Below are positions 22,526-53,124 of a stretch of 64,000 bases of DNA, one piece after another (position 1 is the first letter of the stretch; every line of letters starts with the position of its first letter). The notes under the pieces are model-generated. The model was not told the DNA's origin. It was given only the letters and a program-made list of their open reading frames with translations, and did not search any database. The translations under genes were made by a program, and so were the position numbers. This DNA comes from Bugula neritina (Eukaryota > Animalia > Bryozoa). The stretch lies in NCBI GenBank assembly GCA_964035545.1, contig OZ037769.1, positions 16,336,633 to 16,400,632 on the forward strand, written 5' to 3'.

Positions 22526-24049
22526 ACATATTAATTGATAAGATTACAATATTCCTATATTCACTACATGCAGATGTTATTAGTTGTACTAGTAGTTGCA
22601 TATACAGCTTAGTAATAATATTCTAATCTATTAAATATTCCACATCTTGCCACGTGCTCTATATTTCTACACATAATATAATATTGCTGTATATATAATG
22701 TTGTTGGATGATACAATTAGCTAAGATGAAAAATTCTTATGTGCATTTTGTCAGTGTAGGTGTGAACTGCACATGCTCCATAGAGAAATAGAAATACTGA
22801 GTATAACATACTGAAAACCACTCTGCTGTACAGTTATAATGTTGCTGTTAATTTTGTTATTGATAAGCAGATTTGATGACACATAAATATATTATGATAT
22901 ATCCGTGTTCTTAGCATATTTCTAATTGTCAAAACTCTGGTATAAAATCACAATAATAAGCTAGCATTGGAAATTAAGGAATAAGTATATCATTGGAAGT
23001 TATAGCTAGATTGCCATGAGCAGCATAGCATTTTATTGCATGCAAAACAAAGTATATTTGTAGAGCTGTGTTCAACTCACATGCAGTTACTATTGTTTGA
23101 GGCCGTCCATTATTCCGGAATACAATAATGTTATTATGATTATTAGCTACGGCGTTGCATGCATTTTAGCTAATCGTTGTTGTTGCTAACGGGTTCAATA
23201 CATTCGGGGGTTCCCCTTTCAATAATATTATTGTGTTCCTACGCACCCATGTAAGTAGTTAGGTGTACTGCGCGTTCCCGTTTACGTCGGCTCGGTTTAC
23301 TTTTAGATTTATAGTATTAGTATTACAATTATTTTATTAATATTATCTTTACTGTATAGACTTAGTTTTTTTATTATTACAAAACTTAGTATATGCCTAT
23401 CACCAGTAACATTTTACCATTGTGTGACTGAATGGGTATGTAATACTAATAATAAATCGCGTTGAGTTTGTCTGTCAAAGTGAAACTGAAAGTGAATGTC
23501 AAACGCAATGCAACATTAGTAATTAACTATTATTAGTATAAATATTAATATCAACTGTATCAGTACGGATATCAGCATGAATTTGAGTGTCTAATTCTAT
23601 GACTCAAAGTATCACGATGCCTGTTACTATAACTATTACTATTAGTATTAATAGATCACGCAGTGATAATCTTATTTTGTCAATGAGCTCTGATCGTTTA
23701 TGCATTTTGTAGTATTGTAGTGAGGACGTAATACGCGCGTCCCCCAAACCCCTTCAGCCTATCCGAGTGCGTCACGTGATAACCCTCAGCGAGTAGTAGT
23801 TTATCAGTAGAGAGAGCGTACTAACTAAGTGAAGATGTAGTTTTAATCTGCGTACTTTTTGTATCTTGCCATATACTTAGTAGCGAATAAACTTTGTAAA
23901 CTCTTACTTAAATACTTTATTGATGTGGATAAATAGACTATAATTACAAGCTAGGAACCCACGCATAGTAATTACACAAATTACTACAGTGGTGGCAGCG
24001 GTGGGATCTCTAGCTACTATATAAGGACAATGAGAAGTATTAGAACATC

Positions 24050-25267
24050 ATGGACGAGAGTGTAACTTCAATGGAATAAGGTGAGCGAAACATTATTATA
24101 GGCCCTCTCGGAGCTGGAGAGGAGGTATATAGGAATACATTGGAAGTTCCCGTGTTCACGGGCCTCGAGGATGTCGAACAGTTTATCCAAGAGTTCCGTG
24201 AAGTTGCAGCCATTACAAGATGGCCGCCAAGAGTAACTCTTACGAAACTGCGGATGGCACTGACGGAAGAAGCCAAGCCGTACGGGTGGAAGCCTAGCGT
24301 AAACGGGATCATTGCTACACTACGGGCCCGTTTTGGCATGTCCGTTGCCGTCGCCAAGTCCAGGCTGCGAGGATTACTCCGCAAGACATGTACACCGCTT
24401 CCTGACCACGCCACTCTGGTGCAGAGACTGGCACGGACCGCGTATAGCGATCTGCCAGAAACACACAGACGGCACTATACATTCGAAGCTTTTGTGCAGT
24501 CCCTCAACTCTTTGGACTTCCACCACCAGTTACAAGCCAAGGGAGTAACCACGATCGAGGCTGCAATCCAAGAGAACAAGGCCTACGCTGGAGCCGAGCG
24601 ACTCTATAAGACGGAAGAGGCCACTCCCCGGACCTCTAGGGAACCAGACCATCCGGTCCGCATAGCTGCCGCGACCATTAAACCCCCCATAGAGATGGAG
24701 ATAGGCCGCTTGATGACTAAACTGGGACAATTGGTGGCGACGATAACATACAACCACTCGAGGAAAAGTAAGAGGCCGGCCACAAAGCCCCCCAGACCTA
24801 TGATGCAACGCAGGGAAAGCGGCAACCAGGGGCACCGCCGCCCAAGCGGCCCACGATTCAAACGGCAGCAGAAACCACAACCTCCCCGGAGACCTCCAGA
24901 GCTCCGCGGGCCCAAACCGAGAGGAAAACGGGGTGGATGTCGCCAGGAGCCCGTACGGGCCCAGCGGCACGCCCCCCGTCAATGGCAAACACCCCGCCGA
25001 AACCAGCCAACCGGGTCGACCACGAGACCCCTTCTCTCTTCCTCTCACCAACCGCTTCGGTCCGTTACCAGTAATGGAGCAGACCAGCGAGGCCCCTCAG
25101 GGCATCGGGGAGGATCAAAACACCCCCCCGCAAGGAAACTCTCACCGGCCCCGCAAACCGCGGAACAAACGGGCACAGCCCCGTTCGGCCGAGACCGAGC
25201 ACGCTGGGGGAGTACGGGTACAACCTCACGGAGGCAGCTACTTCTTGCCAGGGAAGGTGGCCGGTAA
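24050..25267 (+). CDS. gag: Gypsy Gag of element 1 (in-frame TAA at codon 10; zinc knuckle degenerate)
   Basis: ATG at 24050 is in frame with ORF 24140-25267; VPVFTG..EQFIQEF..W capsid-like region is homologous to the Gag of elements 2 and 3; TAA at 24077-79. Confidence 0.8.
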
Positions 25268-28200
25268 AGCTGTCACCTTCCTGTTAGACTCCGGGTGTAC
25301 CACTAATCTCCTCAGCCGTCGGGTCTTCGACACCCTCCCTCTCAAGGAGAGGGGAGCCTTAGCTCCCTGTACCGGGGAACCGGGCACCCTAGCTGACGGG
25401 TCACGGATTCCTTTCTACGGTATCATAGAATTGACTGGGCGCGTCCGCGACCAGGCCATTCAGGAAACCTTCGTCATTAGCCCACTTGAGGAAGATGCCA
25501 TACTGGGGATGCCGTTCTTGAAGAGACACGGGTGCCATATCGACTTTAGCAAGTCAGCCATGCTAATGGGCGGCAAAGAGCTCACCTGTGTCGACAAGTT
25601 CGGTCGTCCCCTAGCGGGAGGTGTGCAGGTAGTACGGAACTGTACTATACCCGGCCGCTCCCGGGCTACCGTTCACTGCAGAGTGAACAATAGCCAACTC
25701 TCGGGGTTAGGGGTTGTCGAAGGTGCGCACACTAGAATCCAACTCGCCAGCAGTCTTAACCGGCTGACTGACCGAGGAGAGATCTTGGTGCAGTGTGTCA
25801 ACCCCTTCTCCGAAGCGGTACAATTACCGTCAGGATCCATGCTGGGTCGCTTCCACTCCATCCAGGAGGAGGATATAGGGCCGTCGCTGGGAGCTGCGAC
25901 GGAAGGTCCCCAACAGAGCCCGTCAGTTAGGCGGGGGACCGTCCCACCACACGTCAAAGAGCTATACCAGGCAGCGTGTGACGGCTGCACGGGCAACGTG
26001 GAACGCCAGACCATGGCTCAGTTGCTACGTGATTATAGCGACGTGTTCAGCAGCGGGGACCATGACGTCGGCCTGACCACGGCCGTCCGGCATGAGATAC
26101 CGCTAGCTGCAGGGACTACCCCTATTCGACAGCCCACTAGGAGGCTGGGACCCGAGAAGGAAAAGGAGGTCAGCCAACAAGTCCGGGATCTTTTGGACCG
26201 CGGCCTCATCGAGCCAGCACATAGTGCGTGGAGTTCGCCGGTCGTTCTGGTCCGAAAGAAAGACGGCAGTTGGCGGTTCTGTGTGGATTATCGCAAGCTC
26301 AATAGCGTGACCATACAGGACGCCTACCCCTTACCCAGGATCGACAAATCTCTGGACGCCTTAGCCGGCAGCAAGTACTTCAGTACGCTAGACTTGTTGA
26401 GCGGCTATTGGCAGGTCCCCCTCAGCCCAGACGCCCAGGAGAAGGCGGCGTTCATCACGCGGGACGGCTTATGGAAGTGGAAGGTCCTCCCCTTCGGACT
26501 GACTTCTGCCCCCGCCACGTTCCAGCGGCTCATGGAACAGGTCCTCAGTGGACTCCACTGGAAGACACTGCTAGTATACCTCGACGACGTCATCGTGATC
26601 TCCCCAGACTTCCAGACACACGTCAGCCGTCTGCGGGAGGTCTTCGATCGACTCCGAGGCGCCAATCTGAAGCTCAAACCCTCCAAGTGCGCTCTCTTGC
26701 AGCCAGAGGTGAAGTACCTGGGGCACGTCGTCGGCCGACACGGTGTGGCGACGGATCCTGAAAAGGTACGAGCTATAGAAGATTGGGTAACCCCTCAGGA
26801 TTTGACCGGACTACGGGCTTTCCTGGGGCTGGTAGGGTATTACAGGCAATACATACCAGACTTAGCGGGGGTAGCGCAGCCATTAAACCGGCTCACCGCA
26901 AAGGGGGTGACCTGGCAGTGGACTCCCGTCGAACAGAGAGCGTTCGACTGCCTCAAGGGCCGCCTGCTGGAGGCCCCTATCCTGGCCTATCCAGACCCTG
27001 CCCTGGAGTACATCCTCGATACTGACGCCAGTGACCAAAATGTCGGCGCTGTGCTGTCCCAGGTGCAGGAGGGCCGCGAAGTAGTCGTGGCCTACTACAG
27101 TAAGTCTCTCTCGCCCACTGAACGAAATTACTGCACTACCCGAAAGGAACTGCTGGCAGTAATCAAGTCGGTGAAGCATTTCAGACCTTATCTATACGGC
27201 AGGAAGTTCCGCTTGCGGACCGACCACGCCTCCTTGATTTGGTTATGCAAGAGAGCAGAACCGTCCAGCCAAGTCGCCCGATGGCTCGAGGTCCTGGCCG
27301 AGTTCTCTTACCGGATCGAGCACCGACCCGGTAGGAAACACGGCAATGCTGATGGACTGAGCCGGCGACCGGACGAAGGGTGTAAACAGTGCCTCAACAT
27401 CGAGAAGAGGGATGGAGGTCCTCCAAAATCCGAGTTGAGAGCACTGAACCACTCTGAAACGGAGTATGACTGGAACCAGGGTCAACTCCTACAGAAGGCC
27501 GCTACGCCCCCGGAGGCTATCCAACGCCTCCGTGCCAATCCTGTCTTGGCTGATAACGTTAGGGAGCTACGAAGACTCCAGGAGGACCTCCCTGGAGTGG
27601 TAGCCGACGTATATCGTGCCAAAAAGGAGGGGCGACGACCCAGTGAAGAACAACTGCGACAGGGATGCACCGAGTTACGGTCGTACTGTCAACGTTGGGA
27701 CTCCCTGCGGATCGGGCCAGATGGTCTGCTGACCATCACAGTGGCCGCTCACAACAACCAGTACGGCAGGAAGAGGGTGATCTGCCCAGCCGCCATACGC
27801 CGTGAGTTAGTATGGGACACCCACAAACAGGCCCACGCCGGGGTAAGCAGGGTGCTCTCCAAGTTACAACTCCGGTGGTACTGGCCCGGCATGGAGCGTG
27901 AGGTGCGGCGTAGAGTCAAACAATGCGAAATCTGCCAGGCCAGCAAGCATGGCCGTCTCCCTGGCGAAGCGGGACGGCGTAGGCTATATGCTGGGAGGCC
28001 ATGGCAGGTGGTAGCTATCGACCTAGTCGGACCCATGCCCGTCACCCCCAGAGGAAACAGTTGGATCCTAGTATTAACCGACCACTTTACACGGTGGGCG
28101 GACGCCCTGGCTATTCCAGATGCGTCCGCCCCCACGGTGGCCAGGGTGCTAGACCAAAATGTATTCTGCTATCTTGGACTACCTGAGCAAATACATTCGG

Positions 28201-28694
28201 ACCAGAGGGCTCAATTCCAGTCCCAACTGTTGAGCGACCTCTGCCGCCTCTGGGGAGTAAACCAAAGCAGGACCACCCCGTACCATCCTCAGGGCAACGG
28301 GGTGGTGGAACGCAACAACCGCATGTTGGGCGATGCACTGCGCAGTCTGCTCCTCGGCCGGAGTCAGGAGGAGTGGGATACGGTACTGCCGCAAGTCATG
28401 CGGGCCTACCGTAGTACACCACACACCAGTACGGGGGAAACCCCTAACCTCCTGATGCTCGGTCGAGAGACGCGAGTGCCTGACCACCTCACATACCACA
28501 TCCCAGAGCAAGACTATACCATTCACGAATATGCCAGTAAATTGATAGAGGACGATATCCCCCCAAACTCCCTACCCGTGATGGTACTGCAGGTGGTGCC
28601 CCATCCCGAACCCTTCTCACGCCGGTGCTCACAAACAATTACTCAGTGTGACAATATTATAGTAACCTACCAGTATGCAGCTCTACCTCTATAG
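24933..28694 (+). CDS. pol: Gypsy Pol: aspartic protease, reverse transcriptase, RNase H, integrase (C-terminus apparently deleted)
   Basis: LLDSGC (PR); WRFCVDYRKLN, LPFGL, YLDD (RT); DTDAS..TDH (RH); HxxxH..CxxC, IDLVGP, HSDQ, VERNNR (IN); PR-RT-RH-IN order is Gypsy. Confidence 0.97.
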   Translation: MDVARSPYGPSGTPPVNGKHPAETSQPGRPRDPFSLPLTNRFGPLPVMEQTSEAPQGIGEDQNTPPQGNSHRPRKPRNKRAQPRSAETEHAGGVRVQPHGGSYFLPGKVAGKAVTFLLDSGCTTNLLSRRVFDTLPLKERGALAPCTGEPGTLADGSRIPFYGIIELTGRVRDQAIQETFVISPLEEDAILGMPFLKRHGCHIDFSKSAMLMGGKELTCVDKFGRPLAGGVQVVRNCTIPGRSRATVHCRVNNSQLSGLGVVEGAHTRIQLASSLNRLTDRGEILVQCVNPFSEAVQLPSGSMLGRFHSIQEEDIGPSLGAATEGPQQSPSVRRGTVPPHVKELYQAACDGCTGNVERQTMAQLLRDYSDVFSSGDHDVGLTTAVRHEIPLAAGTTPIRQPTRRLGPEKEKEVSQQVRDLLDRGLIEPAHSAWSSPVVLVRKKDGSWRFCVDYRKLNSVTIQDAYPLPRIDKSLDALAGSKYFSTLDLLSGYWQVPLSPDAQEKAAFITRDGLWKWKVLPFGLTSAPATFQRLMEQVLSGLHWKTLLVYLDDVIVISPDFQTHVSRLREVFDRLRGANLKLKPSKCALLQPEVKYLGHVVGRHGVATDPEKVRAIEDWVTPQDLTGLRAFLGLVGYYRQYIPDLAGVAQPLNRLTAKGVTWQWTPVEQRAFDCLKGRLLEAPILAYPDPALEYILDTDASDQNVGAVLSQVQEGREVVVAYYSKSLSPTERNYCTTRKELLAVIKSVKHFRPYLYGRKFRLRTDHASLIWLCKRAEPSSQVARWLEVLAEFSYRIEHRPGRKHGNADGLSRRPDEGCKQCLNIEKRDGGPPKSELRALNHSETEYDWNQGQLLQKAATPPEAIQRLRANPVLADNVRELRRLQEDLPGVVADVYRAKKEGRRPSEEQLRQGCTELRSYCQRWDSLRIGPDGLLTITVAAHNNQYGRKRVICPAAIRRELVWDTHKQAHAGVSRVLSKLQLRWYWPGMEREVRRRVKQCEICQASKHGRLPGEAGRRRLYAGRPWQVVAIDLVGPMPVTPRGNSWILVLTDHFTRWADALAIPDASAPTVARVLDQNVFCYLGLPEQIHSDQRAQFQSQLLSDLCRLWGVNQSRTTPYHPQGNGVVERNNRMLGDALRSLLLGRSQEEWDTVLPQVMRAYRSTPHTSTGETPNLLMLGRETRVPDHLTYHIPEQDYTIHEYASKLIEDDIPPNSLPVMVLQVVPHPEPFSRRCSQTITQCDNIIVTYQYAALPL

Positions 28695-29275
28695 ACTATT
28701 CCCTTACAAGTGCCTCCCGCCGGTGTCATTGTGTATTCACTGTTATATTTTTTTTATATATATACATGTTTTTCTTATTACTGTACATAGCCATGTTCTT
28801 TCTTTTATGTGCCACACGCTCTCTCAGTTTTTTTTAGTTTTATAACGTTTTATGTCTGAATTAATTGTATCTGTGTTATCAGAAAGTAGGGCTTTCTGCT
28901 GGGGGGGGCGGTGTAGTGAGGACGTAATACGCGCGTCCCCCAAACCCCTTCAGCCTATCCGAGTGCGTCACGTGATAACCCTCAGCGAGTAGTAGTTTAT
29001 CAGTAGAGAGAGCGTACTAACTAAGTGAAGATGTAGTTTTAATATGCGTACTTTTTGTATCTTGCCATATACTTAGTAGCGAATAAACTTTGTAAACTCT
29101 TACTTAAATACTTTATTGATGTGGATAAATAGACTATAATTACAAGCTAGGAACCCACGCATAGTAATTACACAAATTACTACAGTATCATGAATGAAGT
29201 TGGGGATGGACAGTATTCTAGTTGGTTTTTGTGCTTCCGTTTTGTTTTTGATGTTTGTGTTTTCAGGGTATTCCG

Positions 29276-32200
29276 ATGGCTGAAGCTACAGTTGAGCAGG
29301 TAGAATGTGGATTCTGTGTAACCAGACTAGAAGATCTAGAAGATTCCAGATCTCTACCTTGTTCTCATGTACACTGTTTAAGATGTCTGCTGGGGAACTT
29401 TGAGGTCAATAAGATAGTGAGATGTCCCTTCTGCAGGTATCACTTTACCCTGAGATATTCTCAGTTTGAGTTCTGTTTACTAATCATTGTGAGTTCTACT
29501 ATATTGTGTGTTATATTCTCTACTGAGAGAGATGTATTGTATATACTGTGATGAGTTAGTAACTACTTTACTGTATTGTGTAGGGAAGTATTTGATGTTG
29601 ACATTCACTCTCTTCCTACCTCCAACACCAGAGAAGGTCCATCTCTATACTGTGATAGTTGTACTAGGAAAGGAGTGAATAATCAGCCAGCTGTTATTTA
29701 CTGTAAAACTTGTTCTACTAAACTGTGTGCTAAACACAGAGACGTGAGTTAACAGTCTTAGTGTTTAGACATGGCAGTTTTATTATTTTTAACAATCTTA
29801 AACATTTTCATTAATACAAAGTATCTATGCCAAAGCCCAAGTTTGCCATTTGAACGTTCTTCTTTTATGTCTACTATAACTTCTGATTTGTTTTGAGTTT
29901 TTTTGCAAAGTTTTAGTGAACCGTTGGATAAGTGATAGATCCAGTGTTGATTTGTTATTTACAAGTCACATGACGATGTGCATGGAGGCCACCCTATGAT
30001 CACTATGACTGACTACAGAGCACAGGCTAGTAAACTAGAACCTAGACTGTGTACTAAACACACAGAGTTACCATACAGTATGGGATGTAGGAGATGCCTT
30101 GATCTGTTCTGTACAGAGTGTGTTGGTGGTTTAAAAGGATGTGCAGATGGTAAGCATAGTAGTTTAAAATTTGAAAGTATGTTTTTTTGTTGTAAAAAAG
30201 CACAATTTTGCTATATAAATAAAGGTGCCTGGATAAAAAAAGTGTCAGTTTATACAAGGTTGTATAAAATTCTCTTTAATGAATAGCAAATAATTATGTT
30301 ACAATAGTTACTCATGACTGATATTTGAGTATATTATAATGCCATGCATGTTATTCAGTGTTATTCAGAATTGATGATATTAATACGTAAATCCAGTTTA
30401 AATTTACACACTCCTATTGGGGGGGCGCACCACGCCAACTCAGTATAAATAACATGACTTCCAGTGGTATTCGGCTGGGAACCTTCTCTAGTCAACTTCA
30501 GAGTTAATTAAACAACTTGACTTCGAATAGACTCCTGCTGCACCACTCTGCTTTACCTCAATGAACATGTCACAAAAGAATTTGCTACTTAAGAGAATAT
30601 GTTACAAGATTGTCATGAATAACTTTCTACAGTCTCATTGTTAATTATCTGCTTGAAGATCAATTTGTAAATTGTCACTTTCTTCAGTCTGTCTAACTTC
30701 AGGTTTATTAAATGGCATTGAGTGAGAACAAGTGATGTACATCTGTTTAGTTGTGTTTTCAAGCTGTCTTGTTTTCACTCATGTATTATTTTTATATATC
30801 AGTGAATTCACGTGTTTATTGAGGGGAAAGTTTGTAACTGCAGTGCTGGTATAAATTACAATAATCAATAAATATTTGCTTTCATAGGTTCCCCTCATAA
30901 CCTGATGTCACTGAAAGAGTTGGTAACTGAACTCTCCAAAGAGGTGGATGGGATGAGATCAGAAATACTGGACAGAGAAGATAAACTCTCAGATTTACTG
31001 AAACACATGACTGGAGTATTGTGTGATTATGATAGTGAGACTAGAGATAGGATAGAGACACTCCACAGAACACGTGATGAACAGGTCATATTATATACTC
31101 TGTACTGCTATATGTTAGTTGTATATCACTGTAGTCACTAGTTTGTAAGTCAAGATATAAATAAACTAGTAGAATCTATTTATAGATTGAGAGTATTCAA
31201 CAGAAGTATAAGAAGTTGGAAGAAGAGTTGATAGAATTGAGAAGAAATACTAAATTAGAGTTGGAGAGATTCACTGAACAGGATGTTGGAGTGAAGTTGT
31301 CTGATCTGAATAGACATAGACTTCAGATTGAGGCCAGACATAAACACAATCACCAGGTCTGTGGTTTACTAGTTCCATGATATTATAGTATTTAGTTCTG
31401 TTTGATTTTGATGAAGTGATATTTTTATTCAGTTTCAAGAAAGTGTATATCTTTAGGTGGACATTATAAACAGACATGGGGAGACAATCAACCAGATTAA
31501 GGAGTTGTTATCAGGGAACCTTCCAAATTTGAAACTATCCAATATGGCTACTCTAGAGGTCAAAGGTTAGACTTTTAATATAACTAAATAGTGATTTTTT
31601 AAAACTTTTTCAGCTTAGATGCTCCTTTTTAATAAGTAGTATAGTAAGTAGTGTGGCTAAATACTTTATTACTTTAATTGGCTAAGAAATGTGGGAGTGA
31701 CTGGAATGTGGGAGCGACTTAAATATAAAAGTATGTACTGTCAAACACATTTGTTTACAAGACTTACTATAAATCATGTGTCAGTTAAGTACTCTTTATT
31801 CGATGCACAGGATTCTCTACTGTCTGACATGTGACGATTCCAATTTTGTTGTTTTAATCGCTGTTTTTTCACTAACGATTTAAAGGCAAAAAGGGTGATT
31901 TGCTTTATATTTGAATGCATTTCTTCGGCTTTAAATATTTTAGATAACACTGTAATACTGATCTCAGTCTATTATCAAAACAAAACCTGTTTTGTCTATA
32001 GTGTTAAGTAAACTTGCATTCTCGTAATGTCTGACTATGAATACTGCTTTACTTTAACTAGCTAGACAATGTAGAAACTACCTAAATACATGTTTATTCA
32101 CAGAAAACACATTTATTTGCGAGGCTAGCTGTAAATCATTTTCCAGTTAAGTATTACCAGTTCCTACTGGATATACAAATTTCGCATTGCTTGACATTTG

Positions 32201-34213
32201 ACGATTTGCATTTTGTATTTTTCACAAAACTGTTTACGAGCCAGTTTATATTTGAATGGATGTTTCCACTTTGAATAGTTGAGAGGTTATATCAATAATC
32301 AGTTATATCACATTTATTATCAAATGCATGCTAACACTGGAAGATTATATAAAGTATCACATAATCATATACTATGACTGTTTGAGGTGTGCTGACACCT
32401 GCTAGCACCTGTTTCTTCCAGATCAAAATTCTGTAATCCACAAAAGTGTTTTCTACAATCTGGAAATGTAAAGTTGTCCGATGAGCAGATCGCAGAAGAA
32501 TTTGAATAATAATTTATTTCCCAGCAGCGTACTTCTCTGGTAATTTTCTGATTTCAAAGTTGCTTTGTCAGAATTGTGTGAATTATAAAACTGTGAAGAA
32601 ATTTGTTTAGTGAACAGGTTTGCTCATCATATCATTAATTTGTTCACTATCTTCGTTTTGCTATTTTTGCTACTAAATTATAAGCTTTTGTTAGACAGGA
32701 ATTCGGAGTTGTATTACCAACTATTATTATCGGCCTATGAAAAAAAGTTGTATTTTCATGTAAAAATGTAGTTTTCAGAGTCAGTTTGAATAGGGTTGAT
32801 ACTAATTGTGAATGTAAGTTATATTAAACATGAAAAACAATGATATATTAAATTCAATAGCTAGGATTTCCTGATGAAAACCGTTTTTATTGTAGGTGAG
32901 AGGAGAGAAGTTGAAGTTGAAGTTGTCACCTCAAAAAAAGTGTCAATAGACTTGGAACATGAACTGACAACTCCTGATACTCTACCCACACAGTTGTCTC
33001 TCCTGCATACAGTTCCTGTGTCTGGTCACTGTACTTCAGTCTGTAGTTATCAGGGAAACACTTATGTTGGGGTAGTGGGTGGTAGAGTAGATATAATAGA
33101 TGAGAATAACCAACACAGTAGGGAGTTTGTAGGAGTAGGTAACTCTGTACTCAGTGTAGCTGTATACAAGGACAGACTGTATACTTTAGTATATGGTATT
33201 CCTTACACAGTAACAGTACATGATCTGACAGGGAAACTCATCACCAACTGGGCTCACACTGATCACAGATCTGGGTTTAGTAAACTAGCAGTTGTTAGTG
33301 ACCGGGTTGTTATACCAGACAGACAGAATAAGAGACTAACAGTCTACTCTCTCACAGGGGAGATAATTAGACACATTCAGTGTCCTCTACTCAGTCGTAA
33401 CTGGGTATCAATGTGTGCCGTAGACAATCACTCTATTGTTGTGTCTGATACTCAAACTTCTAAAGTGTTTAAAGTGAATATTCCAAGTGGAGAAGTTGAA
33501 TGGACATCACAAGATGTACCCAACCCTGGAGGTGCAGCATACCACCAAGGGAGAGTGTTTGTTACTAACTTCAGTAATACCACCAGAGTCTGGATACTGG
33601 ATGTGAATACAGGTTAGATTATATACTTACTAATCTATATTATATACTTACTAATCTACATTATATACTTACTAATCTGTATTATATACTTACTAATCTA
33701 CATTATATACTTACTAATCTACATTATATACTTACTAATCTACATTATATACTTACTAATCTACATTATATACTTACTAATCTACATTATATACTTACTA
33801 ATCTACATTATATACTTACTAATCTACACTATATACTTACTAATCTACATTATATACTTACTGATCTATATTACATACTTACTAATCTATATTGTATACT
33901 TGCTAATCTATGTTATATACTTACTAATCTATGTTATATACTTACTAATCTATGTTATATACTTACTAATCTATATTATATACTTACTAATCTACATTAT
34001 ATACTTACTAATCTACATTATATACTTACTAATCTACATTATATACTTACTAATCTACATTATATATTCATATATTCAGGTAAACTGCTCACAGAGATCT
34101 CAGATGCTGCTATAGGGACTGACCCTCTTGTATTTGATCTGCACGTGACAGGAAATACTCTGATAGTCCCGAGATACAATGAAAGTAAAGTACTGTTCTA
34201 CCAAATAGACTGA
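29276..34213 (+). CDS. TRIM-NHL-like E3 ligase (RING, two B-boxes, coiled coil, beta-propeller), copy 2, intact, 610 aa
   Basis: Eight GT-AG coding exons 29276-29436, 29584-29743, 29966-30149, 30888-31084, 31186-31356, 31457-31565, 32896-33612, 34080-34213 total 1833 nt in one open frame. RING CGFC..LPCSHVHCLRC..CPFC; B-box CDSC..CKTC..LCAKH; B-box CTKH..CRRC..FCTEC; helical exons; NHL-like blades. Confidence 0.9.
33613..34079 (+). repeat. 21-bp minisatellite forming the last intron of TRIM copy 2
   Basis: About 21 tatatacttactaatctacat units between GT and AG. Confidence 0.95.
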
Positions 34214-34570
34214 ACAATCTGCTCTACTTTTTACTTGTCTGTCGATAGACAGGGAATTAAAATCTTGATTTGATAAACAATTTTGAAGTTGAATTCACAT
34301 GATATAGGCTAATTTTATTCTAAGTAATTCACTGCATGAATAGCTTTTTCTATTTATTAGATTGTTTTATATTTTCTTTTAAATACATTTTTTCGTCTTG
34401 CTTTAGTTAGTATCATGGATTTAGCCACAATTAACAATTAAGTTAGTGGAGTGTTATGTTGTATTCTAAAATGTGTAAACAATTTTCTATGCACAGTCTA
34501 TAACTTCTAATTTGGTAGAAAATTTCAAAATAAATTAGAAACGGAATGAGTTGTGCATTAATTTTGTGTG

Positions 34571-34850
34571 ATAGAGTTAATATTGTATGGTAAAGTTAGT
34601 ATTGTATGGTAGAGTTAGTATTGTATGGTAGAGTTAGTATTGTATGGTAGAGTTAGTATTGTGTGGTAGAGTTAGTATTGTATGGTAGAGTTAGTATTGT
34701 ATGGTAGAGTTAGTATTGTATGGTAGAGTTAGTATTGTGTGGTAGAGTTAGTATTGTATGGTAGAGTTAGTATTGTATGGTAGAGTTAGTATTGTATGGT
34801 ATAGTTAGTATTGTATAGTAGAGTTAGTATTGTATGGTAGAGTTAGTATT
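34571..34850. repeat. 20-bp minisatellite (GTAGAGTTAGTATTGTATG-type) downstream of TRIM copy 2
   Basis: Reverse complement of the 12181-13300 family. Confidence 0.95.
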
Positions 34851-37028: not shown

Positions 37029-37057
37029 TGTGAATGAGAGTGGTATGTTTATGAATT

Positions 37058-40302: not shown

Positions 40303-42514
40303 TTTGAAATACGCGAAATCCCACCGCTGCCACCACTGTTGTGAGCTTTGGCACACAATTATCAAGCGTGGATTGCCGGCGTATTTAGTTTCAATTTAAC
40401 TAGCAACTACTAACAGAGGTTGCGTACGATAACCTTTATTTAATTCGATAAACATAATTATAACAGTATGTCAAAACCACAATACATCAATCAATTACAA
40501 CACGTCTTACTACTACGAGCCGGCTCTCAACAACATGGTTTCTGCTAGCTAACCCGCGAACAGTCACTTGACCGGAACCTTGCCTTCCGGTCCTTCTGAT
40601 TGGATAGTAGAACATAGTTACAAGTATTCCCATACAGGAGGAGACAAATGCATTATTATGCTACGTAATCCCATTACAATACTCAGTTGTAATTAACTAT
40701 CTAATTCTATACTGACTCAGTGTGATTAATATAGTTGGTGTTACCTCACAATACTTAGGTTGTCTTCTCCTTGTTTCATTATTGTCTATCTCTTGTTGAA
40801 TGTGTAAATACTCAAGGATTTCTAATAAAGAGACAATATTGATGGTTTATTCTGGTGTCTAACACTAAAAATTAAAGAATTATGTAACACAGCCTCTGGT
40901 ACTACCTAAAATGTTGGGGTGGGGAAACACTACTCTATAGCTGAACTGTAGCAGTGAGGAACACAACACTAAATTATAGAAAAGTTTCAATAACATCACC
41001 TCATGTCTGTTATTCAAGAGTTATACTTAGATTTCCAGCTACTCTGTTTACATCTGAAATAATGAATTATTATTATTATACATACAGTAATATTCTATTC
41101 TTCCACATATAACGGCCTATTTATAATATTTGTTATCATTTTCCACCCCTTTTCAACTTATAATTGATAAGATTACACTATTCCTATATACACTACATGC
41201 AGATGTTATTAGTAAGACTAGTAGTTGTATACAGCTTAGTAATAATATTCTAATCTATTAAATATTCTACATCTTGCCATGTGCTCTATATTTCTACACA
41301 TAATATAATATTGCTGTATATATAATGTTGTTGGATGATACAATTAGCTAAGATGAAAAATTCTTATGTGCATTTTGTCAGTGTATGTGTGAACTGCACA
41401 TGCTCCATGGAGAAATAGAAATACTGAGTATAACATACTGAAAACCACTCTGCTGTACAGTTATAATGTTGCTGTTAATTTGGTTATTGATAGGCAGATT
41501 TGAGGACACATAAATATATTATGATATATCCTTATTCTTAGCATATTACTGTTTATGTCTGTGAGTATTCCAATGTTTTGTAATTGTTATTGTAATTGTC
41601 TGTGGATAAACATATATATTGAGATAAGGAAGTTTGGATTAGTTTGGAGTGTTAGGTAATCTTTAATCGGTCTCAAACCATAAGCCAGAGAATGTACTAC
41701 AAACACACAATAAAGTAATATTAGCATAAGTAAGGTTTAGACACAAAAGATTGTATAACCGAGTACATGTAATTACTATAACGTATGATACAGAGTATAA
41801 ACATAATACAAATTAATATAATAACATTGTAACAATAGACTGATGGTGGGGAGGCCCAAACATGTGTCGAACAAAAATTTAAATAAAATTTATAAAATAA
41901 ATTTTGTAATTTATAATTGATAACTGAATTGAATAACTGAATTAAATAATTAAATCGGATTAAATTGAACTTCTGGTTTAGTCAGATTGGTCAGTTAAAA
42001 TGAAGCGAAGTTACTTATTAGCTTTTAGTTTCAAAATTTCTATATAATTTGCAGTTAATTAATTAAAAATAAGAGTTATCTTTGCTCGACAAATATTATG
42101 GTTTGGAAATCATGTAGTAATGTGTATATGCGGTTCTATGTATATTGTGTAATGGTTAGCACTCAGGCTAATATTCTGTGAGACAAATTTGGGATTTGCT
42201 CCCCCAGAAGAATTGAAATTATAATATATGTGCGTGTTGTATAATATATATATATATATATATCTATTTAATGATAATGACAAAGCAAGCAAATCACAAT
42301 AGCAAAAATATTACAAGAATGAACCAAAACAAAGATTGTCCTAGCGACCCTTTGAAATCCTGCTGTGTTATACTAGCAACAGAAATAGCTAAGTTTGACA
42401 ATTGGGATAGAAAGGCTTATACGAAATTGAATACACAATGAGAATTGTAATTAGAACATCAATATTAAAATATATGTTTTAACATAAACTCATACAGCCT
42501 TGAAATAAATTCTT

Positions 42515-44375: not shown

Positions 44376-44485
<110 letters not shown>

Positions 44486-45184: not shown

Positions 45185-46944
45185 CAGGGATGTAGTGGTA
45201 CCCATACGGTCCCATACGCCGTATGGCCTAGAAGAAAATAGGCTGTTCTTGGCCATACGCCCGTATGGGCATATTTTTGAAAGATGATTAGTGCATAGGA
45301 TAGTTAGGGCATCCTCACTGAGAATATTATCATAAATTTCGCTCACAATCTAGTTTAGGTTCTTGTTATGTTAATGCTATGTGGGTGGCATGCGTGTTGC
45401 CTACTTGTGTTTGTTTAGCCTGAGATTACACTATGAATAATAAGCAGCTATCAACATTCCATCTTCTCATCTCTCCATGTTCATTGAAGCGCGAAGTGCT
45501 GTGCATTGGTGATTACTAAGGAAAAATTTTTCATTTTCAGTGTATAAATCACTAATTTGTAGAAAATCTATGAAGGCTATTGAAAAGATAAAAAAGTGCT
45601 ATGCATAAATTTCTCAGGTTTCCGACAGTGTTTGTTCTATTCGAATACCATGCTTTCCCGCTGAGATATTTGGCAGGGATTGAAAAATAAACTTTTCAAG
45701 TAAAATTGGCTAAAAATGAGTAGATTTTTGTCTATAACTTTGCAATAAAAAAATTGAAAACTCGAAAATGCAGGTGCTCTGAGGAAGATCTAAAACATAG
45801 TTTTTAAATTTTAATTCTAGCACAATTAAGTATACGGTTTTATTTGGCAGGACTGAATTCTTATAATATACTAATAATGTGGCCTCAGCAAGGCAGTGAC
45901 AGCTAGAAAGTTGCCCTTAGCTATCTTGTGTGGACTTGCATTTTGTCAATAAGCAATGAAATTTGGAAAAAAAACCAACATGAAATCCAGAAATAAAATC
46001 AAAATGTCTTCAGGAAACAGTACCAGGTGTGTAGGAGAGGTTAATGAAATTTTATCACTGAGGTCTACAGGTACTATATCCACATTTTGGTCAAAAACCT
46101 AGCAGCGTTATTGCATGTTCATGTTAATGATTTTTTTTGCAAACTGTACACCGCCATAAGTAACCTTTTATGTTTGGTTGTACTAACGTCTGGCTTTACA
46201 TTTAATCATCTTCTAGAATCTAGGCTAACACATATTAAACCTGTCAAATTTGTTCTTTTGGGGTATATTTCTTTGATGTGTCTAGTGGAAGCTCAGGGGT
46301 TTTACTTTAAAACCAAGTTAACATACTCTTCTTTGGTGTGTTTTATTGTGTGCAAGGAGGTGTGGTGGTATCTCCTTATGGATTAGACTAGTGTTCTAAT
46401 AAACTCCAAATAGGTTTTCTACCAATTTCTGCTTGCCAATGAGATATCAGTTCAAATTGCTTTTTCTGATTTGCAATCTTCCTCTGTTCTGATATATAAT
46501 TCTTTTTCTGTCCACGTCAGTGTATTAAATATTTGAAGTAATCAGGTTGCATTTGGAGAGCACTTGTTACCTGCCTCTATCCTTCCATCTTTTTGAGATC
46601 TTCAGCAATATTTCTGTACAGGTTGGACTTAGTGTCAGTTGAGTAAGACTACATTTAAAATTACAGTCAACAGGTATGGCACAATACTGAATATTTATAT
46701 AGTTTGCAGCAATGCACAGACGTCGTGTAGCTGATATGGCATGAAAATAATAGCAAGGTGCACATTTCAACACAGATTTTTTGCAGAAGAATTATAATTC
46801 ACAATGGCTTTGAATTGCATAAATTTGCATCAGAAGGGCTTCGGCGGCCGGGGCGCTGCCCCGGACCCCGCCGGGGGCCTAGGCGGCCCCCTGAACCCCC
46901 GGCCTGGGAGTATGGCCATGAATATTTTTGCCACTACATCCCTG
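45185..46944 (+). mobile_element. Non-autonomous hAT-like DNA transposon, copy 2 (clean insertion)
   Basis: Perfect 14-bp TIR CAGGGATGTAGTGG; 8-bp TSD GCTAGATT at 45177-84 and 46945-52; empty paralogous site at 23005-23012. An 8-bp TSD with CAGGG ends is typical of hAT. No intact transposase ORF. Confidence 0.93.
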
Positions 46945-48045
46945 GCTAGATTGCCTTTAGCAGCATAACATTTTATTGCATTCAAAACAAAGTATATTTG
47001 TAAAGCTCTGTTCAACTCACATACAGTTATCATTGTTTGAGGCCGTCCATTATTCCGGAATATAATGATATTATTATGATTGTTAGTTACGGCGTTGCAT
47101 GCATTTTAGCTTATTGCTAACGAGTTCAATGCATTCGGTTTGCCGGCGAGGGGAATCCCCCTTTCAATAATATTATGTTCCTGCGCACCCTTGTAAGTAG
47201 TTAGGTGTACTGCGCATTCCCGTTTACATTAGCTCTGTTTACTTTTAGATTTATAGTATTAGTATTACTATTATTATATTAATATTATCTTTACTGTATA
47301 GACTTAGTTTTTTATTATTACAAAACTTAGTATATTCCTATCACCAGTAACATTTTACCATTGTATGACTGAATGGGTATGTAATACTAATAGTAATAAT
47401 AAATCGCTTTGAGTTTGTTTGTTAAACTTAAAGTGAAACTGAAAATGAATCATTGAATGTCAAACGCAATGCAAAATTAGTAATTAGCTACTATTAGTAT
47501 AAATATTAATATCAACTGTATCAGTATGGATATCAGCATGAATTTGAGTATCTAATTCTATGACTCTCAAAGTACCACTATTACTATTAGTATTAATAGA
47601 TCACGCAGTGATAATCTTCTTTTGTCAATGAGCTCTAATCGTTTATGCGTTTTGTAGTATTGTAATGGGACACGCAATCTAATAATATGGGTTGTTTCCC
47701 CTAATCACTATGTGGAATACTTATCGCAATCATACGTCGTCCAATGAGGAGAACCGGAAGGCTAGCTTCCTGTAATGTGACTTGTTCCCGGGTTTATTAA
47801 CATTTACCTAGTTAGTCGTGTGCGTACTCTTGTGCTGTAAACATGTATTAGTAGTTGACTGATGTTAGCACGTATTATTGTAATGTTTGTCTCATTGTTC
47901 ATTGTACTAAATATAAGTAATTACTCGCCAGCTACCCTAGTAATTGCTAGTACTTGCCAATACTGAATACCTCGGGAAATCCACACGCTAACTCTTGTGT
48001 AACCCACAACAGTGGTGGCAGCGGTGGGATTGTGCTTATATCAGA

Positions 48046-50247
48046 ATGGCAGAAGAAGACAATAAACTACCCATTCCAAGGGATGAAGAGGAGGAAGATG
48101 ACATTGTTACACCTGTAGACCCCGCAGTTTGGGATATGGTGAGAGTCGTTATAGGATTCGAGGAGACTATATATCGGCTGAAGATACCCACCTTTACAGG
48201 TAAAGAATCAGTAGAACAATTCATTCAAACTTTTCAAGACCTGAGGAATTTTGCACGATGGCCACCAAGAATGGCGCTGCTCAAGCTTAGGACAGCGTTG
48301 ACGGACAAGGCCAAGCCATACGGCGGGGGAACTGACACTGCCAGTATCTTTGCTTCTCTGCGGGCCCGTTTTGGCATCTCCGCCATGGACACGGAGCCAT
48401 CCACGGCTCCCGCACCCCGCGGGACGACGAAGAAGCCCCGAAGGAGAACTAGACCCAAGCCGCGCCGCCGGGGGCCACCCCGAGACGGACTCGATGAGCT
48501 GCCGACCTCAGAGACTGCGAGGAAGACGAAGACGCTGTACGAGGCGCCGTCTTCCCCTCCGCAGCTGGTCCACAGCCATCCTCTAACGGGAGAAGAGCCC
48601 ATAGCACATACCTGTACTATGACTGGCCACTCCCGGGGCACCATAGACCGCAAGGTAAACGGTGCCCACACCTCCAGGGAAGGAGTTGTAGAGAGCGCAC
48701 ACACGAGTGTCCCACCTGCCCGCAGCTCTAACCAGCTGACACGGAGCGGAAAGACCTCGGTGCCATGCCTCCAACCCCCCTCGGAGACGGTGAACCTGTC
48801 ACCTCCTACACTAAGCTGTACTCCCTCTGTTCAAGAAGGCGACAGCAGACCATCGCGGGAAACCGCAGTGAGAAGTCCCCAAGAGAGCCCGTCTCTAGGG
48901 CGGAGGACTGTCTCACCCCACACCCCGCACAGCCCGGGGAACCGTGGGCAGACACCAGACGGTTGTGTAGACAACGGGAAGCGCCAGGAGACGGCCACGT
49001 TGCTACACCAAACCGAGGCTGTACCCCACCTGGGAAACCCCAATTCACAGCTCCACGTAAGCTGTTGTCCCGGGGAGGCACCACTGGTGGCGGAGACTGC
49101 CCCTCTTCATCGTGCATTGCCACATAGAGGTTCGCCGCAGTCCAACCTAGGAGACGGGGATCCAACCCCACCTCCACAGAGGGCTGACATGCCCCCGGAG
49201 GTAACACAGGACCTCCGCGCCGAACCTGTTTCAACCGATGGCGTCAAGGGGCTACAATACCTTCAGGAAAATCTTCCGGGGGTGGTAGCCGACGTCTGTC
49301 GAGTGAAACGGGAAAGGCGACGACCCAGTGCCAAACAACAATTGAGACAGGAATGCGCCGAGTTACGGCTATCCTGTCGACGTTGGGATTCACTGTGGAT
49401 CGGGCCGATTGGTTTGCTGACCATGCTTGTGGCTGCCACGCTAGGACTACCCACTGGGGAGAAAATAGTCTACCCGACTGCCATACGCCGGAAGCTAGTA
49501 TGGGACACTCACAAGCAAGCTCTCGCAGGAGCTCAGGGAGTGCTCACCAAATTACAGCTCCGGTGGTATTGGCCCTACATGGAGTCGGAGATACGACGCA
49601 GAGCGAGACAGTGCGAAACCTGCCAGGCCAGCAAACATGGCCGTCCCCCTGACGAAGCGGGGCGGTGGAGCAAACATGTAGAGAGGCCCTGGCAGGTGGA
49701 GGCTGTCAACCTGGTCGGAAACATGTGTGGGACACCACAAAGAGGCGTGGTGAGGCGTGGAAGGCCACTTCCAGCTCAAGAAGTGTGTCAACCAGCTACT
49801 AAGCCACCACCACCACTTCTAGAACCATCCACAGGTTCAGAAGTGCAAAAACCCCCCGAGGGAGGGGCTCCATCCGGAGATACCAAGGAAACTACACCAC
49901 CAGAACAGCATCCTAAGCAAATCCCAGTGCACAGAAAGGACTTAGTACGTGACCGCATCATGTGCGGCAGGTGCAAAGATTCTACTGGGCACCGCATGGG
50001 AAAACGGGCGAACATCGACTTTTGCCTCGGCGGAATCACAAATGAGATTCCTACGCCGGAAGCAAAAATCCTAGTCACGTTGTACAACCACGCTGTTCAC
50101 TCTTTCCTTACACTGATGCAGCCACGAGTAGACGTACATAGAACAGTAACATTACCACCCTCATTCAAAATGTCTTACCATTCTGGATCGAGGGGTGAGT
50201 TAGTTATGTTTTTGGTACGAGAACTAAGCTACATCAGCCAGCTCTGA
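48046..50247 (+). CDS. Fused Gag N-terminus / Pol-remnant ORF of element 3 (no PR active site, RT, RH or IN core)
   Basis: LKIPTFTG..ARFGISA (Gag) joined in frame to the PR-RT linker and WDTHKQA..CETC (IN zinc finger) remnants. Confidence 0.75.
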   Translation: MAEEDNKLPIPRDEEEEDDIVTPVDPAVWDMVRVVIGFEETIYRLKIPTFTGKESVEQFIQTFQDLRNFARWPPRMALLKLRTALTDKAKPYGGGTDTASIFASLRARFGISAMDTEPSTAPAPRGTTKKPRRRTRPKPRRRGPPRDGLDELPTSETARKTKTLYEAPSSPPQLVHSHPLTGEEPIAHTCTMTGHSRGTIDRKVNGAHTSREGVVESAHTSVPPARSSNQLTRSGKTSVPCLQPPSETVNLSPPTLSCTPSVQEGDSRPSRETAVRSPQESPSLGRRTVSPHTPHSPGNRGQTPDGCVDNGKRQETATLLHQTEAVPHLGNPNSQLHVSCCPGEAPLVAETAPLHRALPHRGSPQSNLGDGDPTPPPQRADMPPEVTQDLRAEPVSTDGVKGLQYLQENLPGVVADVCRVKRERRRPSAKQQLRQECAELRLSCRRWDSLWIGPIGLLTMLVAATLGLPTGEKIVYPTAIRRKLVWDTHKQALAGAQGVLTKLQLRWYWPYMESEIRRRARQCETCQASKHGRPPDEAGRWSKHVERPWQVEAVNLVGNMCGTPQRGVVRRGRPLPAQEVCQPATKPPPPLLEPSTGSEVQKPPEGGAPSGDTKETTPPEQHPKQIPVHRKDLVRDRIMCGRCKDSTGHRMGKRANIDFCLGGITNEIPTPEAKILVTLYNHAVHSFLTLMQPRVDVHRTVTLPPSFKMSYHSGSRGELVMFLVRELSYISQL

Positions 50248-51307
50248 CTACACTAGTCAAAAGAGCTGGAGACTCGATAATGAAAAACAGTGGTGAGAAA
50301 TACATTTGACTTTGAGGCCTTAGTGGTTTACTATAGCGATGTATATTCTCGATCAACTATTCATTACTCGAGTCTCACGAGTGTTATAACTGAACAAATT
50401 ACTGGTCAGGCTGTATACGCCGGCAGTACTTCAGTATGATCAATATACTGTTGGATGTTTTCAGATTACACTCGAACGACCACCTCCAGGTCACAGGAGC
50501 AGCTACCCCTATCAATGGACGACGGACCGGAAGTGGACCGCGGACTGCCCGCGGTGCTCCACCAACGACACAGATGGGTGTCGCCAACGACGGAGAAGAA
50601 GATTGAGGAAGCCTGGGGGCCCCCGTCAGATCTGCGGAGTCTGTCACATGAGATGTCCCGCATACTGCGCTCTACGGTTACAAGTAGACGCACGCTTCCT
50701 CCTCCACTTCTGCCCGTGTGGATTCCACGACGTGTTCCCATACCCTGTCACACTACATAAGATGGATTGCTTTCCAGGAGAGAACCACGTAGTCGACGAA
50801 GACTGTTTCCCCGCATTCATAAATGCTATACGGCCCGTCCTCAAGAAGGCCATCACCCTAGCGGCACTAGACATAGGGTTCCAGCAACTACTCTTCACTG
50901 CCCGCCAACAATCCCCCTTAATCAGGAGTCCACCCACCGTCACCACAGACAACACGACACCCCCTGAAACGGAGTAGAGTGAACCTCCTCCACAACCCAA
51001 ACCCAGCCGACTGGCAACAGTCGAAGAACGGCTGCTACGACTCCAGGAAGAATTCACACAATTGGCCCCGGATCTGCTGAGTACCACCACAGGATTATAC
51101 CAGCTGAAAGACTCCGTGGGGCGCCTAAAGAGGAGACTGCGTGCACGTCAAGCACGACACAGGTCCCAATCGCTGCAACAGAGAGGACTGGTCTGCGGAT
51201 TCCTGACTCCCTGTCTTAGACGGAGCGCCACGTCGTATCATATAACATGCCGCGTCCCGCTGGCTCTTGATCCGTGCAACAATCCGACACCACTACATCC
51301 TCTGTAG
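50170..51307 (+). pseudogene. Disrupted copy of the spliced zinc-finger/coiled-coil accessory gene in element 3
   Basis: join(50170-50194, 50465-...): MSYHSGSR-D-YTR..DDGPEVD..EEAWG; frameshift near 50620; in-frame TAG at 50975-77; then RLATVEERLLRLQEE..SVGRLKRRLRARQARHR as in element 2. Confidence 0.75.
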
Positions 51308-52929
51308 CTGACAATAAGCCACATCCCGTCGGCTGTCAACCTGTGTGCCTATCCACGGGTACTTCTCTCTCTATGGCTGACCAGCTGTGTGCTAACTCTT
51401 ATATACATATATTATTCTTGTAATGATATTTCTCTTCTTTCTCTTTGTGAGTTTAGTTTGTGTATACATATTATTATCGTGCTTGTCTTTTTAATATTGT
51501 ATTTTGTTATCAGAAAACGGGGGCTTTCTGCTGGGGGGGCGGTGTAATGGGACACGCAATCTAATAATATGGGTTGTTTCCCCTAATCACTATGTGGAAT
51601 ACTTATCGCAATCATACGTCGTCCAATGAGGAGAACCGGAAGGCTAGCTTCCTGTAATGTGACTTGTTCCCGGGTTTATTAAAATTTATCTAGTTAGTCG
51701 TGTGCGTACTCTTGTGCTGTAAACATGTATTAGTAGTTGACTGATGTTAGCACGTATTATTGTAATGTTTGTCTCATTGTTCATTGTACTAAATATAAGT
51801 AATTACTCGCCAGCTACCCTAGTAATTGCTAATACTTGCCAATACTGAATACCTCGGGAAATCCACACGCTAACTCTTGTGTAACCCGCAACAGTATCAT
51901 GAATGAATCTAGGCATGGACAGTATTCTAGTTGGTTTTTGTGCTTCCGTTCTGTTTTTGATGTTTGTGCTTTCAGAGTATTCCGATGGCTGAAGCTACAG
52001 CTGAGCAGATAGAATGTGGATTCTGTGTAACCAGACTAGAAGATCTAGAAGATTCCAGATCTCTGCCTTGTTCTCATGTACACTGTTTAAGATGTCTGCT
52101 GGGGAACTTTGAGGTCAATAAGATAGTGAGATGTCCCTTCTGCAGGTATCACCTTCCTTCGAGATATTCTCAGTTTCAGTTTTGTTTACTCATCATTGTG
52201 AGTTCTACTATATTATTGTGTGTTATATTCTCTACTGAGTGAGATGTATTGTATACTGTGATGAGTTAGTAACTACTTTACTGTATTGTATAGGGAAGTA
52301 TTTGATGTTGACATTTACTCTCTTCCTACCTCCAACACCAGAGAAGCTCCATCTCTGTACTGTGATAGTTGTACCAGGAAAGGAGTGAATAATCAGCCAG
52401 CTGTTATTTACTGTAAAACTTGTTCTACTAAACTGTGTGCTAAACACAGAGAGGTGAGTTGACAGTCTTAGTGTCTAGACATCAATGTGAATGTCAAGGC
52501 TACAAAATTTAACTAAATAGTTTTATATTATTCAATATGCTTCGGCTTGAGTTCTGACTTTAAAGTTGTGTTTTGTCCTTCATATGGCGCAGTTTCATGA
52601 TGAGGCCCTTGAAGGCCACCCTATGATCACCATGACTGACTACAGAGCGCAGGCTAGTAAACTAGAACCTAGACTATGTACTAAACACACGGAAGTCTCA
52701 TACAGTCTGGGGTGTAGAAGTTGCCTCGATCTGTTTTGTGCGGAATGTGTTGGTGCTTTGGATAAATGTGCAGATGGTAAGCATAGTGATTTAAAATTTG
52801 AAAGTATGCTTTTTGTTGTAAAAAAAGCACAATTTTGCTATATGAATAAAGGTGTCACTATAAGGTGCCTGAATAAAACTGTGTCAGTTTATACAAGTTG
52901 TATAATATTTTCTTTGATATATAAGCTCT

Positions 52930-53124
52930 GTTAGAGTGTTTGCCTAGTAAACCGAGGCCATGGGGACGAGCCCTGACAAAGGTATTGGCGATGTTAGGAT
53001 GAGCATCCAGTCATAATTACTCTTGTGCCCCATTTAAAGAAGTCTTTGGCCCGCTTTAACGAAAACCCTTTCTATCAGGGGTTTCTCACAGGGACAGTGA
53101 CTATAAACTCGCTCAAGTTTTTTC
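52930..53124 (+). mobile_element. tRNA-derived SINE, copy 4, in intron 3 of TRIM copy 3 (absent in copy 2)
   Basis: gttagagtgtttgcctagtaaac..GATGTTAGGATGAGCATCCAGTCATAATT..TTTCTCACAGGGACAGTGACTATAAACT. Confidence 0.75.

Follow-up and report, generated by a model that had tools for sequence, protein, structure and literature searches.

The 64,000-nucleotide stretch of Bugula neritina (Bryozoa) DNA analysed here (GenBank assembly GCA_964035545.1, contig OZ037769.1, positions 16,336,633–16,400,632 of the forward strand) contains two tandem paralogous genes of the TRIM-NHL type, each with a long terminal repeat (LTR) retrotransposon inserted just upstream of its RING exon. We refer to the whole stretch as the window and count positions from its first base. 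The host DNA of the window is approximately 33% G+C, and three LTR retrotransposons stand out against it as sharp compositional islands of 52–55% G+C: E1 (23716–29184), E2 (35388–40678) and E3 (47661–51893). These three young elements lie within 28 kb, and each is bounded by direct LTRs with TG...CA ends and flanked by a target-site duplication of 4 bp. E1 and E3 occupy the same site, ...TTTTGTA[GTAT]CATGAATGAA..., in the two TRIM-NHL paralogs; the junctions were read directly and their coordinates were determined by motif search. We are highly confident both that two different, recently inserted LTR retrotransposons sit at the same base and that the two insertions were independent events.

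The GTAT duplication was located upstream and downstream of E1 at 23712–23715 and 29185–29188 and on either side of E3 at 47657–47660 and 51894–51897, all on the forward strand. Both elements and both TRIM genes read in the forward direction, i.e., these are sense insertions. In each case, the downstream GTAT starts 82 nt 5′ of the AG|G acceptor of the RING exon (29267 for E1 and 51976 for E3), and both insertions lie ~90 nt 5′ of the ATG. The identical site, the sense orientation and the 82-nt spacing, all of them reported in an initial annotation of this DNA, were confirmed by the junction reading and motif search, as were the differences that it gave for the two LTR pairs (1/273 and 4/351 positions). 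Only two RING exons were identified in the window. No empty copy of the 21-nt site was found in the window at up to three mismatches, and none was present among 97 fetched loci. A single exact match of this site in prokaryote genomes, to a metagenome-assembled genome of Methanobrevibacter, was taken as chance.

TRIM-NHL paralog 1 spans positions 29268–33614 on the forward strand, with its exon boundary at 29267/8. Its coding pieces correspond to the RING domain (29276–29449), B-box-like segments (29615–29749 and 29990–30190), a putative coiled coil (30890–31377) and an NHL-like propeller (32865–33614). Paralog 2 occupies 51977–55337 on the same strand, with the RING at 51985–52155 and further pieces onward from there. 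When the TRIM exons were searched one by one against Pfam, the RING of both paralogs matched zf-RING_2 at 30.4–30.6 bits against a cut-off of 27.3; the B-box-type matches were below cut-off (E-values of 8e-6 and 7e-3) and the NHL/propeller matches were weak. On L085, a contig from a B. neritina metagenome, a third TRIM paralog shows 90% identity from a point 10 nt 5′ of the AG onward and is unrelated further upstream. Because this homology starts only 10 nt upstream of it, the acceptor at 29267/8 is supported and, judging from this comparison, probably real. Since the intron of L085 is not homologous upstream of the acceptor, this paralog was unusable as an additional genotype for the insertion site. 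The closest relatives of the NHL exon (79–86% identity) and of the retrotransposons were found in Bugula neritina metagenome records, and nothing near-identical was found.

Identity between the two paralogs is patchy, ranging from 85 to 97%. In paralog 2, the coding sequence of the NHL exon is divided over two frames that overlap (54614–54907 and 54867–55337), and this paralog is possibly a pseudogene. We also observed a third, isolated copy of the NHL exon at 14467–15195 on the reverse strand, which encodes an 86% identical protein and has no RING exon nearby. The split exon and the isolated copy indicate that the cluster holds truncated gene copies.

E1 is encoded on the forward strand and has 273-bp LTRs that differ by one mismatch (272/273 identical). 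The 5′ LTR (23716–23988) starts TGTAGTGAGG and ends ...CTACA, and the 3′ LTR (28912–29184) has a polypurine tract (PPT) directly 5′ of it. A gag-like open frame of 375 codons (24140–25267, forward strand) has no Pfam match and is 39–57% identical to the gag regions of E2 and E3. It is followed by an overlapping pol open frame of 1253 codons (24933–28694, forward strand), which encodes protease, reverse transcriptase (RT), RNase H and the integrase zinc finger and core. The corresponding Pfam E-values were 3e-36 for RVT_1, 5e-35 for RT_RNaseH_2, 4e-15 for rve and 1e-14 for Integrase_H2C2. The domains are arranged as Asp_protease_2 (residues 106–195), RVT_1 (440–599), RT_RNaseH (688–791), Integrase_H2C2 (952–1006) and rve (1022–1119), and this order of protease, RT, RNase H and integrase is that of Ty3/gypsy elements (Metaviridae). 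E1 is thus apparently a complete gag-pol element.

E3, also on the forward strand, is bounded by LTRs of 351 bp each (47661–48011 and 51543–51893; 347/351 identical) that start TGTAATGGGA and end ...CAACA. Its long frame (47995–50247, forward strand) covers the gag N-terminus, part of pol and the integrase zinc finger, with no RT or RNase H. E2 lies on the reverse strand and spans 35384–40682 with its duplications, which read ATAC on the forward strand (GTAT in the orientation of the element) at 35384–35387 and 40679–40682. Its LTRs (35388–35731 and 40337–40678; 342/344 bp) differ by one mismatch and a 2-bp indel, and on the reverse strand it carries a gag-like frame (39370–40365) and a frame for protease and the integrase zinc finger (37058–39472) that is likewise devoid of RT and RNase H. 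E2 and E3 are ~70% identical in their LTRs and 71–82% identical internally, and both lack the stretch equivalent to E1 pol residues ~380–398 to 854–859, which comprises RT and RNase H. They are therefore non-autonomous and need proteins supplied in trans.

All three elements share their cis-acting sequences. An identical 18-nt primer-binding site (PBS) is found in E1, E2 and E3, within the block TGGTGGCAGCGGTGGGAT one base after each 5′ LTR; it appears to resemble the 3′ end of a tRNA-Leu. A polypurine block is also conserved, with a G-rich tract ending ...GGGGGCGG before each 3′ LTR, and the first 12 nt of the LTRs are similar. Judging from their sequences, E1, E2 and E3 belong to one Ty3/gypsy clade. 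Given the common PBS, PPT and LTR tips, the same integrase, or very similar ones, probably act on E1 and E3, and it is plausible that all three elements draw on the same, or similar, proteins for replication and integration.

The paralog flanks are collinear right to the insertion point on both sides. Upstream, positions 23005–23711 of paralog 1 are collinear with 46945–47656 of paralog 2 on the forward strand. Substitution divergence of the non-coding flanks is 6.2% in this 707-nt upstream segment, where indels occur in addition, 8.9% over the 79 nt from the duplication to the acceptor, and 4.3% in the intron that follows. Between the two LTRs of an element, the difference is 0.37% in E1 and 1.14% in E3. 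Because the LTR pairs are far less diverged than the flanks, both insertions followed the gene duplication and were independent, as the initial annotation had argued. Its further statement that the LTRs of E1 and E3 do not align also held: in a forced global alignment, identity was 64%, gaps took up 100 columns and the score was only ~3 SD above that of shuffled sequences, and BLASTN returned matches at the shared ends only. The similarity between the internal DNA of E1 and E3 is limited to the integrase region (~75%) and the short cis elements (PBS and PPT). With no alignable LTR or internal DNA beyond these parts, E1 and E3 are not copies of one pre-duplication insertion.

A variant of common descent would be that recombination or gene conversion subsequently overwrote a single pre-duplication insertion, in one paralog or in both. 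The similarity of the PBS (25 nt, 96%), the PPT block (~60 nt, 85%) and the first 12 nt of the LTR speaks for this, and the patchy identity of the paralogs hints at some gene conversion. However, the LTRs are unalignable over their whole length and could not have been exchanged by a conversion tract with its anchors in the PBS and PPT, and no homology outside the LTRs is available to anchor a larger tract. Neither junction retains a remnant of an older element, and the flanks join into one clean site. Considering also that the LTR pairs are 4–20 times less diverged than the flanks, we regard overwriting as very improbable.

A 1.77-kb non-autonomous DNA transposon (45185–46951, forward strand) with terminal inverted repeats and the 8-bp duplication GCTAGATT is inserted upstream of paralog 2 and not of paralog 1; paralog 1 has the corresponding empty site near 23005. 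This transposon serves as an internal control and shows that the region takes ordinary insertions after duplication. Three copies of it, 98–99% identical, are present in the window (15334–17100, 45185–46951 and, in reverse orientation, 57849–59612). Its terminal inverted repeats start CAGGGATGTAGTGG, its target duplication is 8 bp and a long open frame is absent. It probably represents a non-autonomous DNA transposon of the hAT type with recent activity.

Satellites and young repeats pervade the region and make it hard to assemble, which raises the question of an artefact, either a chimeric join or two haplotypes placed in tandem. Against this, the LTRs of each element form a matched pair and its 4-bp duplication is perfect. 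Divergence between the flanks is 4–9%, with many indels and a private DNA transposon, far beyond what a collapsed repeat would give, and the LTR family of E3 was found independently in B. neritina contig L094 at 94.9% identity. Even if the two copies were alleles, they would still represent two independent insertions at one site. An assembly artefact is thus hardly credible as an explanation.

The target preference of the clade was analysed on contigs with gag relatives fetched from Bugula neritina metagenomes, whose junctions were read for target sites. Within the window, E2 also has the target GTAT in its own orientation; its site is unrelated to the TRIM intron, lies in the 3′ flank of a repeat unit, and is represented by two empty copies in the window, near 11654 and 61367. 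Among the metagenome contigs, GTAT was read at L088 and L096 (5′ junction only in both) and at L094b. For the last of these, only the 3′ junction was used because the 5′ side mismatches its 3′ LTR. The remaining targets were ATAT at L086 (5′ junction only) and L092 (both junctions), ATAA at L087 (both junctions), ATAG at a solo LTR in L094 (both junctions), which is the copy 94.9% identical to the E3 LTR, and CTGG/CTAG (CTRG) at L081 (both junctions). With the TRIM site counted once, GTAT is therefore the target at five of ten independent sites (the TRIM site, E2, L088, L096 and L094b). Its background is 0.7–1.2% per oriented position, which gives a binomial P of ~3e-8. Position −1 of the target is A in 7/9 sites, and TA is central in every case. 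GTAT rather than ATAC was read relative to the element at a ratio of 6:0 (two-sided P ~0.03), which argues against a symmetric motif, albeit in a small sample in which the ATAT sites are symmetric.

These data show that the clade strongly favours GTAT, or more loosely A|RTAD with TA at the centre, and suggest that this preference is coupled to the orientation of the element. A polar motif would explain the sense orientation of both TRIM insertions without selection. The preference cuts the number of eligible positions, and with it the degree of coincidence, roughly 100-fold, but not to zero.

A metagenome scan by pol alignment covered 80 loci, of which only two had terminal repeats, both representing assembly overlaps; it gave no target sites because short-read assemblies collapse or truncate LTRs. 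The long contigs L083 and L084 from ENA metagenomes, which carry distant pol relatives, appeared tandem or circular and offered no flanks. Their head-to-tail repeats of 4.6–6.5 kb are 99.4–99.9% identical, as would be expected of tandem arrays, of circular forms or of an assembly that ran through collapsed LTRs. A scan of viral contigs for relatives identified one distant relative only, and a literature search found no paper on GTAT duplications in LTR elements. The word CATGAA/TTCATG occurs near both window sites and was judged a post hoc observation.

We consider it probable that related integration machinery, with a polar preference for GTAT, returned to a favoured target in a region that tolerates insertions, where local sequence or DNA shape would make this particular GTAT a hotspot. 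Two separate integrase-mediated insertions would have taken place well after the TRIM duplication, made by two members of one Ty3/gypsy clade, with E3 copied and inserted by proteins supplied in trans. The integration machinery is expected to cut around GTAT (loosely A|RTAD, with TA at its centre) in a manner coupled to element orientation. Both paralogs retained TTTTGTA-GTAT-CATGAA in a transposon-rich, insertion-tolerant stretch just 5′ of the RING exon, so that the same bonds could be favoured twice and the polarity of the motif would force the same orientation. Local sequence or DNA shape beyond the four bases may favour this GTAT over the hundreds nearby, and a nucleotide-level hotspot at this position is likely.

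A number of observations weigh against this interpretation. The 49 kb of host DNA in the window contain 1219 oriented GTAT sites, of which 568 lie outside satellites, 255 of these being AGTAT; they are unused. These counts (568–1219) also bear out the earlier remark that GTAT alone is too frequent to fix the position. No longer motif common to the GTAT sites was detected; over ±14 nt around the ten sites, A at −1 and AT-richness were the only regularities. Within the E1 lineage, evidence for the preference comes from this one insertion and one relative with ATAT (L092), and L081, which has the most E1-like pol among the complete relatives, has the target CTGG/CTAG. The sample comprises ten sites, of which L088, L096, L086 and L094b were read from one junction, and most of them lie outside the source genome assembly. 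Finally, motif preference by itself is estimated to produce ~0.01–0.1 such coincidences per genome under assumed genome size and copy numbers, which makes chance unlikely yet not negligible for a finding made post hoc.

Plain coincidence would mean that two elements entered a transposon-dense region and by chance used one and the same GTAT out of many, and that the case was noticed as striking. The roughly 100-fold reduction of target space by motif preference and polarity would make this easier, as would the high local density of three young elements in 28 kb, and the finding was picked after the fact from a scan. On the other hand, for an element that lands in the window, we infer a chance of ~1 in 500 to 1 in 1800 of hitting this site, and the genome-wide expectation given above is low. 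We therefore consider coincidence quite unlikely.

The initial annotation had proposed either a hotspot in the 5′ intron of TRIM genes or selection that favours insertions at this place. In such a gene-linked scenario, a host protein or chromatin at the 5′ ends of TRIM-NHL genes would tether integration, or selection would keep the insertions, for example because a sense 3′ LTR provides a promoter 90 nt before the start codon. The position and orientation of the two insertions, both in sense, 82 nt 5′ of the first coding exon and ~90 nt 5′ of the ATG, are compatible with this idea, GTAT alone does not explain the position, and mdg4 (gypsy) integrates near OVO binding sites in the ovo promoter (PMC12919034). 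However, in the fetched flanks none of the nine other clade insertions (E2 and eight in Bugula neritina contigs) is near a TRIM exon, so that 9/11 clade insertions have no TRIM link, and the motif polarity would already account for the sense orientation. The disrupted NHL frame of paralog 2, a possible pseudogene, further weakens an argument from selection. In Pfam searches, the E1 pol showed no chromodomain or other targeting module, with only the zinc finger, core and rve_3 recognised in its integrase; relatives of E1 have an SH3_Tf2-1 fold and no chromodomain. Because none of the nine other insertions is beside a TRIM exon, the clade is not TRIM-specific or otherwise tethered to a feature. 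With sequence at this site from two paralogs only, and an unrelated intron in L085, the TRIM-specific claim was not supported, and we regard a gene-linked origin of the hotspot as unlikely.

A stronger form of the preferred reading, repeated use of a favoured GTAT, would posit a true nucleotide-level hotspot 82 nt 5′ of the RING exon that is defined beyond GTAT by DNA shape, a host factor or an element factor such as the ORF3 product described below, with the LTRs tolerated or even serving as promoters in a gene family that has expanded and is probably immune-related. We put this forward as a rather doubtful possibility.

The RT-less architecture of E2 and E3 was also identified in the B. neritina contigs L087, L088 and L096, and because of this recurrence the RT-less lineage can be taken, on comparative grounds, as old and successful. 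In E2, E3, L087:3861–9246, L088 and L096, RT and RNase H were lost through the same deletion, and the frames for gag, protease with integrase zinc finger, and ORF3 are still open. The RT-less copies are young in the window and older in the Bugula neritina contigs. The lineage resembles a non-autonomous partner that has long accompanied the autonomous, ORF3-bearing elements L081, which has ~7.4 kb between its LTRs, and L094b. In the autonomous element at L094:1455–9019, the 3′ LTR ends ...CTCATAACA, and the sequence before the PBS ends ...ATTATTACA, with no match to that LTR; this element may be a recombinant or nested copy.

ORF3 is a conserved third open frame of ~220 codons downstream of pol that is present in E2, in the B. 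neritina copies and in autonomous L081 and L094b, absent from E1 and degenerate in E3. It lies at 36008–36697 on the reverse strand in E2, at L096:9446–10102, L087:8164–8607, L094:7657–8259 and L081:10577–11180 in the contigs, and as a remnant at 50515–51121 on the forward strand in E3. Its product features a Cys2-His2-like CxxC-12-HxxxH motif and a C-terminal coiled coil. It matched no Pfam family, the best hit being a sub-threshold C2H2 (E-value of 0.12), and no relative was found in the PDB. In a library of 1.8 billion proteins, it had 86 cluster representatives, some of them 23–38% identical and up to 600 residues long. That ORF3 has a DNA-binding or targeting role is a guess.

Large minisatellite arrays form part of the repeated TRIM unit. 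A 19-bp unit is repeated at 12181–13303, 34564–34850, 56054–57558 and 61824–62513, and a 21-bp unit at 13814–14463, 33618–34066 and 63034–64000; the 21-bp array begins immediately behind the NHL-like exon. A 20-bp unit forms a 3-kb array (18838–21897), inside which positions 20001–22000 are ~7.5% G+C. The 19-bp unit contains TTAGTATTGTA, which resembles the junction between flank and LTR start in the E2/E3 lineage; this may be chance.

Identical insertion sites are usually taken as proof of common descent, both as homoplasy-free markers and for the dating of duplications. Here, two unrelated-looking elements independently filled the same base in two paralogs, at least partly through a strong, polar target preference, and this serves as a warning for such inferences. 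The data also offer an initial look at how Ty3/gypsy elements of Bryozoa choose their targets. If the hotspot is true, the 21-nt empty site would be a simple substrate for studying guidance of integration beyond the 4-bp core. If, in addition, the LTRs are tolerated or even act as promoters, the locus would illustrate, in a phylum that has received little study, how paralogous genes can convergently capture retrotransposons in nature.

Ty3, which is tethered to Pol III start sites, and Tf1, which is tethered to Pol II promoters, reuse integration sites with nucleotide precision, and in this respect the present case resembles both. It differs from them in that most Ty3 and Tf1 copies are found at one kind of target, whereas 9/11 insertions of the clade described here have no TRIM link and the window contains no tRNA gene.

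Closer parallels are found among metazoan elements. Drosophila elements of the Gypsy superfamily (412, gypsy and Idefix clades) generate 4-bp duplications and have AT-rich target motifs that reach beyond the duplication (Linheiro & Bergman 2012, PMC3276498). The bryozoan clade shares with them the 4-bp duplication, an AT-rich core with TA, a preference one base beyond the duplication and a motif common to related families. The Drosophila motifs are, however, palindromic (ATAT, TATA), whereas GTAT is non-palindromic and was read in one orientation (6:0), albeit in a small sample and in a bryozoan host. The mdg4 (gypsy) element of Drosophila, which repeatedly enters the promoter/first intron region of ovo (PMC12919034), is likewise a metazoan Ty3/gypsy element that has independently and repeatedly entered one short segment at a gene's 5′ end. 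That system involves one family at one locus, was seen in mutagenesis screens, has insertions spread over tens of nucleotides and shows a bias ascribed to OVO binding sites; in the B. neritina window, two families entered two paralogs at the identical base. Viewed alongside these systems, the case is likely an insertion hotspot and not a new kind of system.

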